From NCBI GenBank assembly GCA_000388065.2, contig KB932202.1: DNA of 64,000 nt. One strand, written 5' to 3'. Shown here piece by piece: positions 1,833-10,463 of the stretch. The stretch is from Fonticula alba ATCC 38817. Its lineage: Eukaryota; Protista; Nucleariida. Under the pieces are notes generated by a model that searched no databases, was not told the origin of the DNA, and was given only the letters and a program-made list of their open reading frames with translations. How positions within the stretch are numbered: the stretch's first letter is position 1; each line of letters opens with the position of its first letter. A program made the position numbers and the translations under genes.

Positions 1833-4245
1833 CGCCCCTCCCTCACAAAGGGACATAGCCCTGCTCTCATTCGCCACACGGGGCCGAAGCGGCTGGGATG
1901 ACAGGGCCCGTGCTCATGGCCAAGCCGCCTCTTCCGCCCCCCCTCCCCCCCTGAGCCCCGCCTCTCAACCACGCGCACCGGCCGCCTACGGGCCTCCGCC
2001 CTCCTCTGGGCCTTTGGCTGTCCGGCTTGTCTGCCCCCTTTCATGGTCCCTGGACCGGTTGGCTCCGTCGTGTGTGTAGATGTATGTGTGTGTGTGTGTG
2101 TGTGTGTGCGCGCAAGTGGCGGAGGTGCGGGGGGGGGGGCGGGGGGCGAACAACCGGCTGACATCTCCGCCCATGCCGCCCAGGAGCTTGCGTCTCCCAG
2201 CGCCCCCGGCTGCCTCCCGCAGGCCGGTGACTGTTCCAGGTCGACTGCCATCGCATCACTCTGCGCCCGCCTGGGCCTCTCGGCACCTGGCCATAGGGCG
2301 TTCCCGTGGGGCCGGGCCCGGGCCCAGGGCAGGAGGAATCATCAGCCCCCGGGGCCGCATGCGGCGGAGTGCTTGTGCCTCCCTCTCTGTGGCTTCCGGC
2401 CTGCCTCCCGGCCGCCCTCAGCCTCTTGCAGCTTGGCGGGAGATTGCCGGTCAAGTCCGGCCTGTGGTCCCGCCAGCCCCATGCCCCCCCCCCGCCCCCC
2501 GCCCGCCGCCACGCGCATCCGGGGCCCAGGAAGTACCCAGGCCAAGGGCCAGGTGTGCCCCCCACCCCGAGCAGTGTTTGTGCAGGGGAGGGTGCACACA
2601 TGAGCCGCGCCGAACTGCTCCCCTCCCCTCCCCCCCCCCGTCGGCAGGGGGACCCGCACAAATAGAAGCGCCCTCGCGCCCCGCCCCCCGCCCCCCGCCC
2701 CTCTCCTAGACATAGGATTCTCACGCTCCGCCGTGGACTCCGAGGAGCGGCAGACGGATCGGTCCTGCCGCGCGGCCTCCCCTCCCATCCTGCCAGCTCA
2801 AGGAGCCCGAAGCGACTGACAAACCCCCCCCCCCCCCCCCGCCAGCTCCCTCGCCCCGGAAGCAGACTGGCCTCCCGAAAGACGGACGCTGCCACCTGCG
2901 CCGCGCCCGCGCCTCTGTGCTCTGCCACCCCTCCCCCCGCACGATTGCATGTCTGGCTTTCCGTCTCCCTGCCCTGGCTCCCCCTTTCACCGGGAGCCCA
3001 GTCTGCCTCGGGGACATTTTCCGGCTTTTATTTTCACTGGCTGGCCCGCCGGCGTCGTTTGCCGGGTGTCTCGCTTGACCGCGTCACACACCAGCCCTGG
3101 CCTTCGGCCGACCGACAAAACGCCCCGGCCTGCCTCGTTGCCCGAGCCGCACCGGCCGCCCCCACACCCTAGGGTCCCCGAATGCCACCTGTCTTTCTTC
3201 CTCCCCCCCCCCCCCCCTGAATGGTCTGGTCGAGATCAAGCAGGCCAAGCCCGCCCCGAAGGCCGCCCCCGCCGCCGCCGCCGCCCCGGCTGCTGAGGCT
3301 GAGAAGGTGAGCGCGGAGCCGGAGGGGTGGCGGCGGACGCGTATCCTCCGTTGTTGCCTCGCGGCTCCCCTTCTTTCTTCCCCCCCCCCCCCCCCCCCTG
3401 GAGCAGGGCGGCAGACATCGTCCGCAACGCGAAAAATCAAACATAAAGCCAGCAGCAAGATCCAAGTGTTCCTTCTCCCGTCACTTCGGTCGAGGGGAAA
3501 GGCGCCCCTTTTTCGGCCTGGGTGGGACGTGCGATTCTCGCCCCCCCCCCCCCGTCTTTCGGCCAGCATGATGCTGGCGCCGAAGGCCCGGACACCCACC
3601 CCGCCACGGGTTCCGAAAGCACCGTGATCCCCCCCCCGCCCCCCCCCCCCCTTCGTAGTGTTATTGTTTATGAGTATGAATTTGCCGCGCACCGGCTGGT
3701 GCAGGTGTTTACCCACCCACCCACCCACACGCACGCCCTCTGCGCCTCCGCCACCCCCCTCCCCCCCCGAGCCCCGGAGAGGGAGAGAGGAAACCGGATT
3801 CTTACCCCTTTCATTGTTTGATTGGCAAGAATGCATACGTGTGCGTGTGTGCCCGGGGAAAAAGCCAGAGCACTTCGCGCCCGCGCGGAGACAGATCACA
3901 CGAGCAACCTAGGCCCATGTCCCATAGAGGAGATGCATCACATGAACAAACCAGAACCAAATAACTACATTGGCATATCCTCGTGTCAAGCCAACGCATG
4001 CGAGTCGCGGATCGTGGGGATGTGTGCAAGTGTGTTGTCTTTTCAGCCGGTGCGATGTGTGTATACACACACACACACACACACCATCGCCACAAGGGAA
4101 ACCAAGGAGAAACAGGACAGGGGAGGGAAGAAGGGGGCATGTGGAGGGAGGGACAAGGCGGCGCGGGAGAACAGCGTCTCTCGCTCTCATTCACGGTCGC
4201 CTCTCGCCCCTTGTGCACCGCCTTCTTTTTTTTTCTTCCTCCCTT

Positions 4246-4937
4246 TCAGGGAACAACGTGCGGGTGGCCACCAGCACCAACATGGCTACTGCTATGGGCC
4301 GTTCCCGCTGGCGGGTTGTTCGGAAGAGCAGCCATCATCTGCGGAGAATTCACCGTCGTCGTCGCCCGCGGCAAGGCCGTCGTCTCCCCCGGCGGAGACA
4401 GCTTCTTGCGCTTGCGCGGCTTGGCCGGGGCCCCGGCGCCAGCAGCCCCGCTGCTTCCCTGGGCCGAGGCCTTGTTTCCAGTGCCAGTCGCAGGGCTACC
4501 TTTCCGGCTGGACGTCTTCCCCGAGCTGGCGGCCTTGCCACTGCCGGATTGCTTGGCCATGGCGGCGGCTCCTCCTCCAAGAGATGGTGAAGAGGCAGCC
4601 GAGGCACTGGCCGAGGGCGGCTGCGAGGCCGACCCCTCACCAGCCGCCCCTCCTCCGGGGCTTGAAGAAGCACCCCCGGCAGCCGGAGCAAGGACACTTT
4701 GCTTACGCGACCACCGCAGGCCGCATGCATTACAGAGGGATTTCTCACCATCCGGGCCGCGGCGCCACTCCAAGGATGTGGTTCGCCCGCAGCCATTTTG
4801 GGGACAGGGCAGCCCCGAGGGAGATGGCCGGGGTGTGCGCTTGGAGGCACCGCCGGTGGCCGGGTCGCTTGGGGCCGGTGGTGCGGCGCCAGTGGCCGGC
4901 ATCGGGGCCCCGGCGCGAAGCTGCCCAAACTGCGGCG

Positions 4938-4992
<55 letters not shown>

Positions 4993-5560
4993 ATACTGCT
5001 GATGGTGCCGACGCTGCATCAGCAGCATTTCCGCTGCAGACATGTTTCCATTCATATGATGATCCTCCATCGGGACATACTCCTGGCTGCCAGCCATCGA
5101 TTGCCGCCCGCCGTGATGATGGTGATGGTGATGGTGCTGCTGCTGCTGTTGTTGATGGTGGTGCTGATGCGAGTGGGCCTGCTGTTGTTGCTGCCGGTAC
5201 TGTTGCTGGAACTGCTGCTGTTGCTGGTGGTGCTGTTGCTGGTGGTGCTGCTGCTGGTGTCCATCATTCGAGCTGTTACCAAATGCAAACCCCTTGCCGG
5301 AGTTGACACGCATGAGCTCCGCCGCCGCCTCGAAGACGCCGGCAGTCATGGCCAAATCGGCCAATGAATGCATGGGGCCATTGGTGTTGTTGCTGGAGGA
5401 GGCGGTGCTGCTGCTGTTGCCGCTGACCGAGCCTCCATGGCCAACGCTGCCGTCATGCCCGCGCTGTTGCGAAAGGTTACTCAAGAAGGACGCAGAGATG
5501 TGGGTATCCGCCGCCAGCATCCCCACACCATTCATACCACCCTGGGTTTGGGCATTGTGG

Positions 5561-5592
<32 letters not shown>

Positions 5593-6966
5593 AGGGAAGT
5601 ATGACTGCGTGCCACCGACAGGGCGGTGTGAAAAATGTGTTTGCTCGTTGCTGGCTCCTCCCTGATGGGGGATCGTAGTAACTGTCGCTGTGGACACCAC
5701 ATCGCTCCCCGAGTCCAGCAGGGCCAATGATGTGGAGGAGGTGGAGGCCGAGATGGGGCTACCCATGCAGCTCATGGCTGCCCGACTCAAGGTCTCCAAC
5801 GAGGTGGCCGCCTCCAGTTGCTGGATATCCGGCGGCGAGTCCGAGGAGAAGGTCAGCCCGGGGTCCAAATTGGTCGGCATGAAGTCCGCCTGGGAGAAGC
5901 GCGGGCGTTGCTGCTGCATCATGGCCGACAGGACAGATGGGTCCTTCAGCTGAACCCAGCCAGTGAAGGACACCACTCCGACCACGGAGCACACGCGTCG
6001 CGGATCGGCCGGATCCATGACCGGTGACAGTTGGATCAGCTCGCGCGTGGCAAAGATCGCTGTGTCACCGTCGTGGCCGCCATGCCGGCCGCGAGGCCCA
6101 GCCCCGCGGCGGACCTGACGCAGAACGACAAATGGTCCCGAGGGCTTTTGGGTCTGAGGTATGGAGGCATCCGACAAGCGTGTGCGTATGTGAGCAGTGG
6201 CAAAGGGACATTATAGAGGGGGAAGATCGACAAGGAAGAGCAAAGCAAAGCAGGGTCCCCCCCCCCCCCTCCCCCCGGAAGGCAGCATGCTCCCTTGATC
6301 ATCTGTTCATGTGGTTTCGGCTTCTTGTTTCTCCCCTTTCCCGCCTCTTCTTGGACGCACCTCGACTACCGAGTGCCACATACGCTCGAAGAGATTGCCG
6401 GTGAAGCGCTCCAGCGGGTTGAGAGCCTGGTTGCCGGAGCACACATCATCCACAATGGTGAAGGTTTGGCTGCCATTCCAGTGCCGAGCATGCCGCGGCC
6501 GGAGAAGGTGCCGCAGGTTGGCCGAAAGCTCCAGTCCCGACGACTGGCTATCATACGACGTGACCACCCCGAACCAGGGAGGCAAGGTGAGCAAATCGCC
6601 CGGGGCCATGCCCCAAACCAGTTCCGAAGAGAAGGAGGCCCGCGTGATGCATCCGGTCGAGGCATCACTCTGGAAAATGATGTCCGAATTGGAGGGGGTG
6701 GTGGCAGGCGGCGAGGAGGAAAGCCCACGCGCGCGGGCATGCGCCTCGCCGAGGGTCACCGGCGCCGGGGTCGGGAGTGAGCTGGTGACCGGGGTGTCTC
6801 CCGAGGGAGTCACGTCTGGGATATAAAAGAGAGCCAGTGACTCAACCTTTTTTTTTTTTTTTTTTTCCGTCAAGGGGGAGAGGAGAGCACAGAACAGGGG
6901 TCAGATTGAGGAGGGTGTCATGGCGCATGCTTTTGAGCATGCGCAAGCAATGGCCCTCACGCGTAC

Positions 6967-7000
<34 letters not shown>

Positions 7001-7679
7001 TGAGCAAGACAACTTGGGCAGGGACGCACCTGGTCGAACTCATGGGTGATATCCTGTTCGGCCAAGCGCAAGGATACCGTGTTCGGCGGGGATCCCGGCG
7101 TGGGAGGGGCAAAGCGCAGTTCGGCCAGGAAGAAGGAATACTCGATCGGCTGGACACAAGGATCATTGCCATCCTCCGACCCGCCGGAGCTAGGGCGTGC
7201 AGGATTGGCAGGTGCCTCGGAATCGGCCCCAGCGCCCGGGACCGCATTGTGTGACACCAGGCGCCGGCGGTAGAGGGTCTTGAAGACCACTTCCGATCCG
7301 GGGACCTCTGGAGCACCCGCGCGCTTCTGGGCCAGTTTGCGCATGATCAGCGCCTGCGATGTCCGTAGGGCATGCTGTGTGCGTGTGAAAAGGGGGGTGT
7401 CAATGGACAGGCAGGCGGGAATGCTTGGGTGGATGTGTGCGCATGGAGAGTGGGGTGGGGAGGAGGGGAGAAAAAAAAGAAGAAGAAGAGAAAGCAGGAC
7501 GACAAGGGAAGGGAGGCATACCCGAACGCCGTCCCGATCACCAGGGTACAGAAGACCAAGGAGGTTCTTGCGCCGAGTGGAGGGGAGAGCGGAACCGGTC
7601 GGTGTGGGAGAAGTGCCAGCCGCGGTATCCGCTAGGTGGGCAGATGGTTGGGTTGGAAAGGAGAGGCAGGAGGTAGAGG

Positions 7680-7717
<38 letters not shown>

Positions 7718-7806
7718 AATACACACATGTGTCATCCAGCCCGGTCCAAATGCGTGTCAGAGAGTGGTGTCACCCGAAAGGGGAAGAGAGTAACAGCAAG
7801 TATACA

Positions 7807-7837
<31 letters not shown>

Positions 7838-8622
7838 CTCGGGTTGGGGAGGGTCCTTCACGTACCGAGGTCCTGATCCACAGGAGACGCAGTGCGACGG
7901 GCCGGGCCATCGGGGCCATCGGCCGCGGGAGCATCCTCCCCACCGGCATACGGCGACGCCCGGAGGCTGTCGGGCGGCATCGACAGAGAGGACACCAAAG
8001 AGGCGGCAGGGACAATGGTCTCATCGGCCAAGGTCACGGCGCTGGCCATGGAAATCTCCGGGAAAACACGGTCGTCATCCTCCGGACCGAGGTCGATGTC
8101 AAGATCGGCCGTTCGACCGTCAAAGTAGCGCACTGTCCGAATCAGCTTCAATGCCTCGCCCTCATCAATGTCCCAGGGGGGAGCAGCACCAAGAGGGAAG
8201 TCCCCCTCGGTACCGGCGCCCTGCTCGGCGGCCGAGGTGAAGGTATCGAAGCGATGGCCCAGACCGGTGGCATCCACGCCATCCGGCAGGCTAAAGAGCA
8301 CGTCGAGCCGGGAGAGCAGGCAAAGAGGCAAAGAGGCAAAGAGGGGTCAGCGAACAAAGACGGCCGGGGTGGGGGGAGGGCGGGGGACAGAAGGCATGGG
8401 GACATACTTCTGCTCATTGAGGGCCAAGCTGGAGCCCGGCAAACCGACAACCGAATTGCTTGCCGAAAGGGTGGGGGTCTGGTCAGCCTGACCTTCGAAA
8501 AAGTGGCCCTGTTCAGCTCCCCCAGGCGGAGCGGGGGATTGACGCGACTCCGGCAGGTTGAACGGGTAGTTCGGGATGGTCAGCGCCACATCGTGCTCGA
8601 GCTTCAGGCCAAAGCACGACAT
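4246..8622 (-). CDS. PAS/PAC-PAS-GATA zinc-finger transcription factor (White Collar-2-like architecture), ~1162 aa, 6 exons
   Basis: Phase-consistent exons 8622-8408, 8290-7866, 7631-7522, 7374-7030, 6846-6361, 6153-4246 (3489 nt, all GT-AG). Splicing assembles the PAS-type segment [15 protein letters not shown]|HALRTS and a PAC-like end [15 protein letters not shown] second PAS starts at [32 protein letters not shown] and ends near AIFATREL. The C-terminal half has polyQ/polyH tracts and the GATA finger [29 protein letters not shown]. The true start could lie further upstream because of the N gap at 8729-8738. Confidence 0.85.
4702..4806 (-). other. GATA-type zinc finger, C-X4-C-X18-C-X2-C
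   Basis: Translation [35 protein letters not shown]. EWRxGP...LCNACGL is the hallmark of 18-residue-loop GATA fingers. Confidence 0.95.
4948..4992. repeat. (CTG)15 coding repeat, polyQ on the minus strand
   Basis: Perfect trinucleotide run. A second run, (CTG)10, lies at 5563-5592 in the same exon. Confidence 0.95.
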
Positions 8623-10463
8623 GTTGGTAGCGGTGACGGCGACAGCGGCGGCTGACAGGCAAGCCGACGGCGGCGACGACGGGACACTGTCGGCTCCGTG
8701 GTCACGGGCAGAGTCGTTGCTTTGCGGGNNNNNNNNNNGGGGAGAGATGGACGGGGTGAGAAAGCAGCGGCAAGGAAAGACCGAAGGAAGTGCCGGACAT
8801 ACCGGAGGCGAGGGGAAGGCGATCCCCCTTACTCTGTGATGGGAGAGCGGAGTGGAGCGCGACGATGGGGCGGGAATCGGGAGAGGGGGGGAAGTGAAGT
8901 CAAAAGGGCGCGCGTGTGTGTGCGGTCCTTGGCGGCAATCCCGCGTTGATGTGCGAGAGATGGGGGGACAGAGGGAGGGGGGGGGGGACGACGGGGGAGA
9001 GTGCTTCCAGGTGGCGATGGCGAGAGGCCCAAGGGAGGCAGCCGAAAAAAGGCGCGACCATGCACCGGGCGGGGGAGGTGCGGCGCGAAAAAAGCCGCTG
9101 GGCCCAATGTCGGGAAGGACACCCACCCAGTCGACTTGCTCCTGGTCTCTCGCCGCTCCCGGCGCTTTGCCTGTTTCTCTCTCGTGTGAAGAGCGGGACG
9201 GTCGATCACCGGAAGGAGGCGCAGCCTGATACGCCACTTGGGCCGTCGGTCAAATCAACTTGGCCCCGCCCGAGCCCTTTCTCCCAGTTCCCCTTTTCGC
9301 CGTTTGGTGCGCCTACGGCCCGAGAGGTCACCCAGCGTCAACCAGCGGATGTGCATGATTCGTTTTTTCCTTTGCACGGATCGCGCTGCGATCGGTGAGC
9401 CTGGCAGGGGCGAGGGCCGGCCGGTCCGACCGCGCGTGCATCGGACGCCAGCGTGTGAGAGCAGAGCGAACACCGGGTTGCTGATCGGCCTTAGTCTGGC
9501 GGCCGCTTCTCGCCACGGCCCGTGGGGGCGGGGGGGGGGGGGGGGCGGGTGGACTTGGATCGATCGGCCACCATCGAACGCACGCCTAAACTCTCCTTCA
9601 CCTTCTGGTTATGGACGCCGGCGCACGTTCCGTTGCGCTGATCGACACCCGGAGGAGGAGCGGGAAGAACGATCGGGGGCCGGGCTGGGTGGGGCCGGGC
9701 CAGGCCTGCAGGGGGGAGGGGGGGGGGGGTCACCCGATCGCACGCACCTCTCCCGGTGGCCGAAAAAGGGATTCCTTGACCTCTCTCAAAAGGGGGATAT
9801 CACTGAGGGATTTTCAACCCCCCCCCCCCCCCGGTTCGGGGTGCAGGGAAGCGCGTACACACGCGCCCGCGCGCGCGGGCCGGGGGCTCCCGCATTTTCA
9901 TCAGCAGCATGCTGGACCAACAGAAGCGTCTCCCTTCAGAGGCCAATGCGGTCGCAGTCAGGGCTCCAGCATGCGAGGGTATGCGATTGCCCCCCCCGGA
10001 CGCGGCCGCGTCTTTTCTCTCCTCGGCGCTGTGGCGCGCAAGAGCGGACCCTCTTGACTTGCTCCCCCGGCGCCTCCCCGGCGCCTTTTGGGGGCGCAGG
10101 GCGCCCAGGCGGAGAGAACAAGAGAACCAGGCAGAGAGCGGGGTAAAACGGACCGGCGAAGCCGACCACCAGAACTCTTGGCGCGTTTACCCCAGCCAAG
10201 GGCCTCTCGGCTGCGAGGACTCCCGTCGATCTGGATCCCGGTCGAGGGTGTCCCCCCGCCCCCCTGCACACACAAAAAAGGTCGGCCGCTCGGGCCCTGG
10301 GTCCATGGGTCTCGGGCAGGCCCGACGCGTGGAGCGGTCAGCAATTATTCCGGCGTTCGAAAGAGTCGAGATGCTAGTCAAGCCTTGCGGCTCCCTGAGC
10401 CCTTTTAAAGGCGTGTGTACCTTCACACTCACATTCACACATACACATATGCATGGAGCGCAT

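Follow-up and report, generated by a model that had tools for sequence, protein, structure and literature searches.

An expressed GATA factor gene of Fonticula alba and its candidate PAS-PAS N-terminal half

Positions 4246-8622 of a 64,000-nucleotide stretch of Fonticula alba ATCC 38817 DNA (contig KB932202.1; the whole stretch is called the window below) hold, on the minus strand, an expressed six-exon gene for a protein with a GATA zinc finger. In fungi, the chief transcription factors of the blue-light response and the clock are the White Collar proteins. The initial annotation, made from the letters alone, had placed two PAS/PAC-like modules upstream of the finger and likened the whole to the White Collar proteins WC-1 and WC-2. 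As a whole, the locus is best explained as an expressed GATA factor with a diverged PAS-PAS N-terminal half in a White Collar-like architecture, a reading that we hold with slightly better than even confidence. The annotation's surmise of a non-fungal opisthokont host agrees with the NCBI lineage, Opisthokonta; Rotosphaerida.

A transcribed gene with an 18-loop GATA finger

As read from the frame and from complementary DNA (cDNA) contigs, the gene spans 4246-8622, with its ATG at 8622 and a TGA at 4248-4246. The coding sequence (8622-4246, minus strand) comprises 3489 nucleotides, or 1162 codons and a stop, and yields a protein of 1162 residues; its six exons contribute 215, 425, 110, 345, 486 and 1908 nucleotides. 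An assembled contig of 2421 nucleotides, present in two 2012 runs, joins 8408|8290, 7866|7631, 7522|7374 and 6361|6153, and also joins the ends of an intron in the 5′ untranslated region (UTR) at 8803|8719; because it skips GT..AG introns, it must be cDNA. At the joint of exons 4 and 5 the contig pieces 7374..7028 and 6839..6361 are separated by 5 letters, so that only 7030|6846 (GT...AG) fits, the placement of the 'GT' being ambiguous. Intron 4 accordingly has its GT at 7029-7028 and its AG at 6848-6847, and all phases fit with exon 5 at 6846-6361. Overall, five GT..AG introns are spliced out in the cDNA contigs, each precisely where it had been predicted. The six spliced exons of the initial annotation are therefore borne out at every junction, the upstream exons are spliced to the GATA exon, and the start of exon 5 is corrected to 6846.

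Base composition was examined alongside the transcript. The G+C content of third codon positions (GC3) exceeds that of second positions (GC2) in five of the six exons, at 0.70-0.76 against 0.48-0.55. The DNA around the gene is GC-rich, at 0.59-0.73 per 500 nucleotides, which together with the short GT..AG introns fits a compact protist genome. RNA runs labelled organism B contained essentially no reads from the locus. The locus encodes an expressed six-exon gene.

The last exon, whose coding part (6153-4246) is 1908 nucleotides long including the stop at 4248-4246, carries the finger. Residues 455-484 of exon 6 match the Pfam GATA family (PF00320) at 44.1 bits, against a cutoff of 26.8 (E 1.5e-11), in an alignment that begins after the first Cys. 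The finger, CPQNGC-X18-CNAC followed by the basic tail GLRWSRK, lies at 4806-4723 by Pfam and by alignment; in the PDB it comes closest to GATA18, a plant factor with an 18-residue loop (E 6e-8), and animal GATA-1/3 also match. Eighteen residues make up its loop, the seventh being Glu. According to a survey of fungal GATA factors, WC-1, WC-2 and NsdD-like proteins are of the 18-loop type; as a separate criterion, Glu at position 7 marks out a type IVb 'plant-like' class (WC-1, WC-2, NsdD/Ltf1) (PMC7457929); the Fonticula finger has both the 18-residue loop and the Glu-7 of type IVb. Exon 6 thus carries a true GATA finger of the 18-loop, Glu-7 kind found in fungal WC-1, WC-2 and NsdD.

The cysteine spacing of the finger, CX4C-X18-CX2C (CPQNGC...CNAC), departs from the standard CX2C-X17-20-CX2C: the first Cys pair is CX4C instead of CX2C, a point absent from the initial annotation. 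The variant CX4CX18CX2C has been reported in plant GATA surveys (PMC8153473, PMC11608367), and the Fonticula spacing was probably acquired independently of the plant fingers.

Relatives of the finger were sought by word searches of 5.8 billion proteins, in which the exon 6 query reached proteins of up to 1111 residues (1.75 times the query length). The eight best fingers belong to three WC-1-like proteins (LOV+PAS+GATA), three WC-2-like proteins (PAS+GATA) and two 'GATA-only' metagenome gene calls; a search with the finger only returned three matches, all of them LOV/PAS+GATA proteins. The finger is 41-57% identical to those of the White Collar types and 60% identical to that of P0001, a metagenomic protein (over 48 residues). 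P0001 alone among the aligned fingers has CX4C (CIAPNC), 'SLEWR' and an 'SPxGxPC' lead-in in common with Fonticula, and the two can be aligned around the finger over 68 residues, 56% of them identical (E 5e-17). The finger tail quoted in the initial annotation is present in the finger at 4806-4723, and the likeness to White Collar fingers claimed there holds: LOV/PAS+GATA proteins account for six of the eight best database fingers, and the seventh, that of P0001, has upstream PAS exons.

The same class of finger occurs in the fungal NsdD/Ltf1/SUB-1 proteins, 18-loop GATA developmental regulators without PAS domains, which carry an EWRRGPDG-like loop. That the Fonticula gene is a relative of these regulators is suggested by the type IVb 'plant-like' finger that they have in common (PMC7457929). 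Against this, the 'GLRW' tail matches the aligned White Collar-type fingers, and the closest relative carries PAS exons. Nor does any NsdD-type protein appear among the best word-search matches, and NsdD-type proteins fall by their size inside the length range searched. We regard such a kinship as highly improbable.

Predicted PAS domains in a metagenomic relative and the candidate PAS region of Fonticula

P0001, the protein with the closest finger, lies on the ENA contig L001; contigs L002-L006 represent the same organism in other samples. Four exons were found on one strand of L001, with canonical splice sites and all in phase 0: exon a (552-749), which has a GC donor; exon b (841-1359), which holds a complete predicted PAS domain (PAS-B); exon c (1453-1503), placed by its splice sites; and exon d (1587-2744), which consists of P0001 and four further residues. 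The stretch 552-2744 of L001 corresponds to 4169-6371 of the longer contig L004, the last-exon products being P0001 and P0009. The two contigs describe a compact four-exon PAS-PAS-polyglutamine-acidic-GATA gene of about 645 residues, from an uncultured eukaryote present in at least five ENA or JGI samples. A metagenome scan for further relatives of L001 brought up nothing but 100%-identical copies, and neither the cluster members nor L004 contributed new diversity or additional upstream exons.

Profile comparison and modelling give good support to the prediction that the L001 domains are PAS domains. Exon b matches Pfam PAS_4, PAS_3 and PAS at E values of 2e-3 to 7e-3, below the gathering cutoff. 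In hhalign comparisons it scores 90.5% (E 1.3e-6) against WC-1 PAS-B, 75% against the WC-2 PAS, 34% against PAS-C and 12% against LOV, and a phmmer search of the PDB with this exon returned mainly PAS and LOV domain proteins, all weak. An AlphaFold2 model of PAS-B, built on a seven-sequence alignment, reached a predicted local distance difference test score (pLDDT) of 87.3 and a predicted template modelling score of 0.77; its elements run strand-strand, four helices, three strands. Foldseek placed the model at template modelling scores of 0.75-0.84 to solved PAS domains, ARNT, HIF, BMAL1 and PER among them, and of 0.85-0.89 to Atlas PAS clusters. Upstream, exon a (the head of PAS-A) matches the N-terminal half of a mixed PAS profile (58%, E 1e-4 by hhalign) and has no match to the LOV profile; the head of exon b ends in '...VIVLERDVTD'. 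A PAS-like exon a followed by a PAS exon b whose head ends in 'DVTD' therefore indicates that L001 holds a PAS-PAS-polyglutamine-GATA gene.

Segments of the Fonticula exons upstream of the finger were compared with this gene by BLASTP and by Smith-Waterman alignment against 20000 shuffles. Residues 3-36 (7623-7522) of exon 3 (7631-7522, 110 nucleotides) align to residues 20-54 of L001 exon a, the 'sl..i.HPsD' segment of PAS-A (BLASTP E 0.028; equalled in 45 of 20000 shuffles, p 2.3e-3). The tail (7116-7030) of exon 4 (7374-7030, 345 nucleotides) aligns weakly to the head of exon b, that is, to the last strand and 'DVT' end of PAS-A (E 0.067; 2066 of 20000, p 0.10). Residues 54-91 (6687-6574) of exon 5 (6846-6361, 486 nucleotides) align to the start of L001 PAS-B, covering its first strands and helices (E 7e-4; 5 of 20000, p 2.5e-4). 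Finally, residues 3-17 of exon 6 (6147-6103) align to the 'PFVVER' strand of PAS-B, PNQPFVVERACKNG, with strand positions taken from the model; this match was not found by BLASTP and was reached in 718 of 20000 shuffles (p 0.036). The four segments stand in the same order in both genes, with a Fisher's combined p of 3.2e-6. Among the other exon pairs (n=14), 13 gave p >= 0.26, the exception being exon 5 against exon a, a Ser/Pro-rich match with p 0.0075. By these alignments, homology between the Fonticula and L001 genes probably spans their length; that of Fonticula has diverged heavily and is about 500 residues longer.

A body of results weighs against PAS modules in the Fonticula protein, and part of it favours a plain GATA factor whose N-terminal half is lineage-specific and largely disordered, without a PAS fold, the L001 matches being chance or the vestiges of decayed domains. 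Both candidate PAS domains are split by introns, and the direct tests were made exon by exon, on single exons; every one of them was negative or uninformative. Neither Pfam nor NCBIfam found a PAS match in any Fonticula exon, and with PAS hidden Markov models built from twelve White Collar PAS domains the exons scored no better than shuffles. A comparison of the exons with White Collar PAS profiles by hhalign gave nothing significant, the best value being E 0.004 over 25 columns (exon 5), and an Atlas feature search of the exons gave no PAS lead. Neither exon 5 nor the head of exon 6 has relatives: a phmmer search of 1.84 billion representatives with exon 5 returned zero matches, with no self-match either, and residues 1-135 of exon 6 found none in the word search. 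A single-sequence AlphaFold2 model of exon 5 was uninformative, at pLDDT 32. The N-terminal region also contains long Ser/Pro/Ala/Gly-rich stretches. The matches to L001 cover about 115 of roughly 590 N-terminal residues, two of the four being individually non-significant; exon 2 (8290-7866, 425 nucleotides) has no recognisable domain and no match in L001; and the genes of Fonticula and of L001/L004 differ in intron positions and have no common gene neighbourhood. On the side of the relative, the alignment given to AlphaFold2 for L001 PAS-B itself contained White Collar PAS domains, and only one of the five models reached pLDDT 87.

Three observations argue against a plain GATA factor. The four same-order matches fall on homologous PAS elements of L001, at the combined p given above; residues 63-87 of exon 5 are placed in the same register by three different PAS profiles in hhalign; and the relative with the same rare CX4C finger has two predicted PAS domains. 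We therefore consider a plain GATA factor unlikely, if a serious contender. Weak same-order matches to L001, set beside negative direct tests, leave the PAS-PAS-GATA reading partly supported. For the two PAS/PAC-like modules of the initial annotation, this means that the alignment with two L001 PAS domains speaks for them, whereas exon-by-exon Pfam, NCBIfam, hidden Markov model and hhalign comparisons speak against them; profile and fold checks of the kind that the annotation had proposed for the spliced protein, run here on single exons, detected no PAS. Its statement that no LOV motif is present stands, since a six-frame reading of the window contains none (G.NCRFLQ / GXNCRFLQ).

The gene product of 1162 residues would act as a nuclear transcription factor. 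The finger would bind (A/T)GATA(A/G)-type sites. The Gln/His-rich tracts that precede it in the sequence of exon 6 (5592-4942; Q10, H/Q runs and Q17) would act in activation, and KPRKRKK (4422-4402) resembles a nuclear-localisation signal in its basic character. The N-terminal 590 or so residues would represent a much-diverged, insertion-laden counterpart of the two PAS domains that are clear in L001/L004. If PAS folds persist there, they would most likely serve dimerisation or the sensing of small molecules or redox state; because there is no LOV signature, the protein would not itself be a flavin photoreceptor.

Other features of the two loci

At the 5′ end, the Fonticula transcript begins with a UTR exon at 8957-8803, whose upstream boundary is an estimate from the 155 nucleotides of cDNA contig beyond the junction. 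The GT..AG intron that follows, known from cDNA, occupies 8802-8720 and holds a 10-N assembly gap at 8738-8729, which the cDNA contig crosses by splicing only. Exon 1 (8719-8408) consists of 5′ UTR at 8719-8623 and of 215 nucleotides of coding sequence at 8622-8408, which end in phase 2. No ATG occurs in the 5′ UTR pieces. The 3′ UTR extends from 4245 at least to 4100, and cDNA contigs continue past that position.

Two other splice sites were considered and rejected. A donor for exon 1 at 8493 was discarded on the frame and the cDNA joints, and the more obvious acceptor for exon 5, 6816|6815, would break the frame and disagrees with the cDNA joint. This better-looking acceptor lies 31 nucleotides downstream of 6846 and is unused in cDNA, whereas the acceptor of intron 4 (6870-6847) has a run of about 20 A before its AG and no pyrimidine tract, yet is used. 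Introns 2 and 4 contain long (CA)n microsatellites (7835-7806, 7722-7688 and 7002-6973), which give rise to 'THTHTH'/'CVCVCV' pseudo-open reading frames. At the CAG/CAC repeat tracts of exon 6 (5007-4928 and 5601-5553) the cDNA contigs are interrupted.

In L001, the gene has one GC-AG intron, and the intron after it contains a (GTTT)n repeat. Metagenome gene callers divide the gene into 'proteins' of 199 and 381 residues. Its neighbours on the contigs (L001 3659-6172; L004 523-3261) are an alpha-actinin, two RRM proteins and a coenzyme A-transferase family III gene; the alpha-actinin is full-length, with four repeats, and can be aligned over its whole length with animal alpha-actinin-2 (E 5e-92). 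The second of the two 'GATA-only' metagenome gene calls, P0002 (L007 890-3949), is likewise truncated and lies on a eukaryotic contig, its frame being open for 63 codons further upstream. An upstream open reading frame in L007 contains '...RFHPQDLP...' in PAS register and gave no significant PAS signal (hhalign E 0.08).

Relation to White Collar proteins and other known systems

Might the gene be a true member of the White Collar family, a WC-2 or LOV-less WC-1 orthologue that forms a light-regulated complex with a LOV-bearing partner encoded elsewhere? Among database proteins its finger is most like WC-1/WC-2 fingers, L001 PAS-B matches WC-1 PAS-B and the WC-2 PAS better than LOV or PAS-C, and Fonticula belongs to the lineage sister to Fungi, all of which count in favour of membership. 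Opposed to it are the lack of a LOV motif in the window, a count of two PAS modules, where WC-2 has one and WC-1 has LOV plus two, and a CX4C knuckle seen in none of six aligned White Collar-type fingers. A 2022 survey likewise traces WC-1 and WC-2 to the fungal ancestor only and found none in an aphelid proteome, although Fonticula and the nucleariids were not included (PMC9616733). We judge family membership in this sense improbable. In the literature we found no paper linking Fonticula to White Collar proteins; papers naming Fonticula alba and GATA exist, and their contents lie outside this negative.

Returning to the preferred reading, a GATA factor with a diverged PAS-PAS half, descent from WC-1/WC-2 or sisterhood to them is possible. 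A further scenario, which we put forward as speculative, is that the White Collar architecture is older than Fungi, PAS modules having been joined to an 18-loop, Glu-7 GATA finger before that lineage arose. The Fonticula and L001 genes would then belong to a PAS-PAS-GATA lineage without LOV, one that is either sister to WC-1/WC-2 or ancestral to them; the fungal blue-light complex would have come about later, when LOV was added to a PAS-GATA regulator that already dimerised. If so, the Fonticula gene and its clearer L001 version would be a concrete candidate for a pre-fungal precursor of the White Collar system, and the question of what role a White Collar complex had before light sensing would become testable. 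Should the PAS modules have decayed, the gene still documents a CX4C variant GATA finger outside plants. With partial support, it is best filed as a PAS-GATA (White Collar-type) variant in a relative of fungi that is not itself a fungus.

Set beside known systems, the gene is most like its metagenomic relative. Fonticula and L001/L004 share a CX4C-X18-CX2C finger with 'SLEWR', the 'SPxGxPC' lead-in, the same order of modules and polyglutamine before the finger; they differ in length, about 645 residues in L001/L004 against 1162 in Fonticula, and in that the L001 PAS domains are compact and recognisable.

The resemblance to WC-2 (WC-2/LreB/Bwc2) lies in one or more candidate PAS modules N-terminal to a single C-terminal 18-loop GATA finger, without LOV, in the Glu at loop position 7, in the ...LCNACGLRW... 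tail and in 46-53% finger identity to the WC-2-like proteins P0003-P0005. WC-2, however, has one PAS domain, found by Pfam at E 1e-11 to 1e-13, whereas Fonticula has two candidate modules, none of them detected by Pfam; the Fonticula protein is also about twice as long, its finger has CX4C and not CX2C, and its host is non-fungal. With WC-1 (WC-1/LreA, LOV-PAS-PAS-GATA) it has in common several candidate PAS-type modules, polyglutamine tracts and a C-terminal GATA finger; the WC-1-like P0006 is the best finger match apart from P0001, at 57%, and L001 PAS-B matches WC-1 PAS-B best. It differs from WC-1 in lacking LOV and the NCRFLQ cysteine motif and in having at most two modules against three, and the head of L001 PAS-A does not match LOV.

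The NsdD/Ltf1/SUB-1 regulators resemble the Fonticula protein in the 18-residue loop and 'plant-like' class (PMC7457929) and are set apart, by description, in having no PAS. The plant CX4CX18CX2C GATA factors have the same unusual cysteine spacing, and the best PDB match is plant GATA18; this one aligned plant finger has Leu where Fonticula has Glu in '...EWR...'. To our knowledge, plant GATA fingers generally have no Glu at that position, and we know of no PAS modules in plant GATA factors of the CX4C variant.

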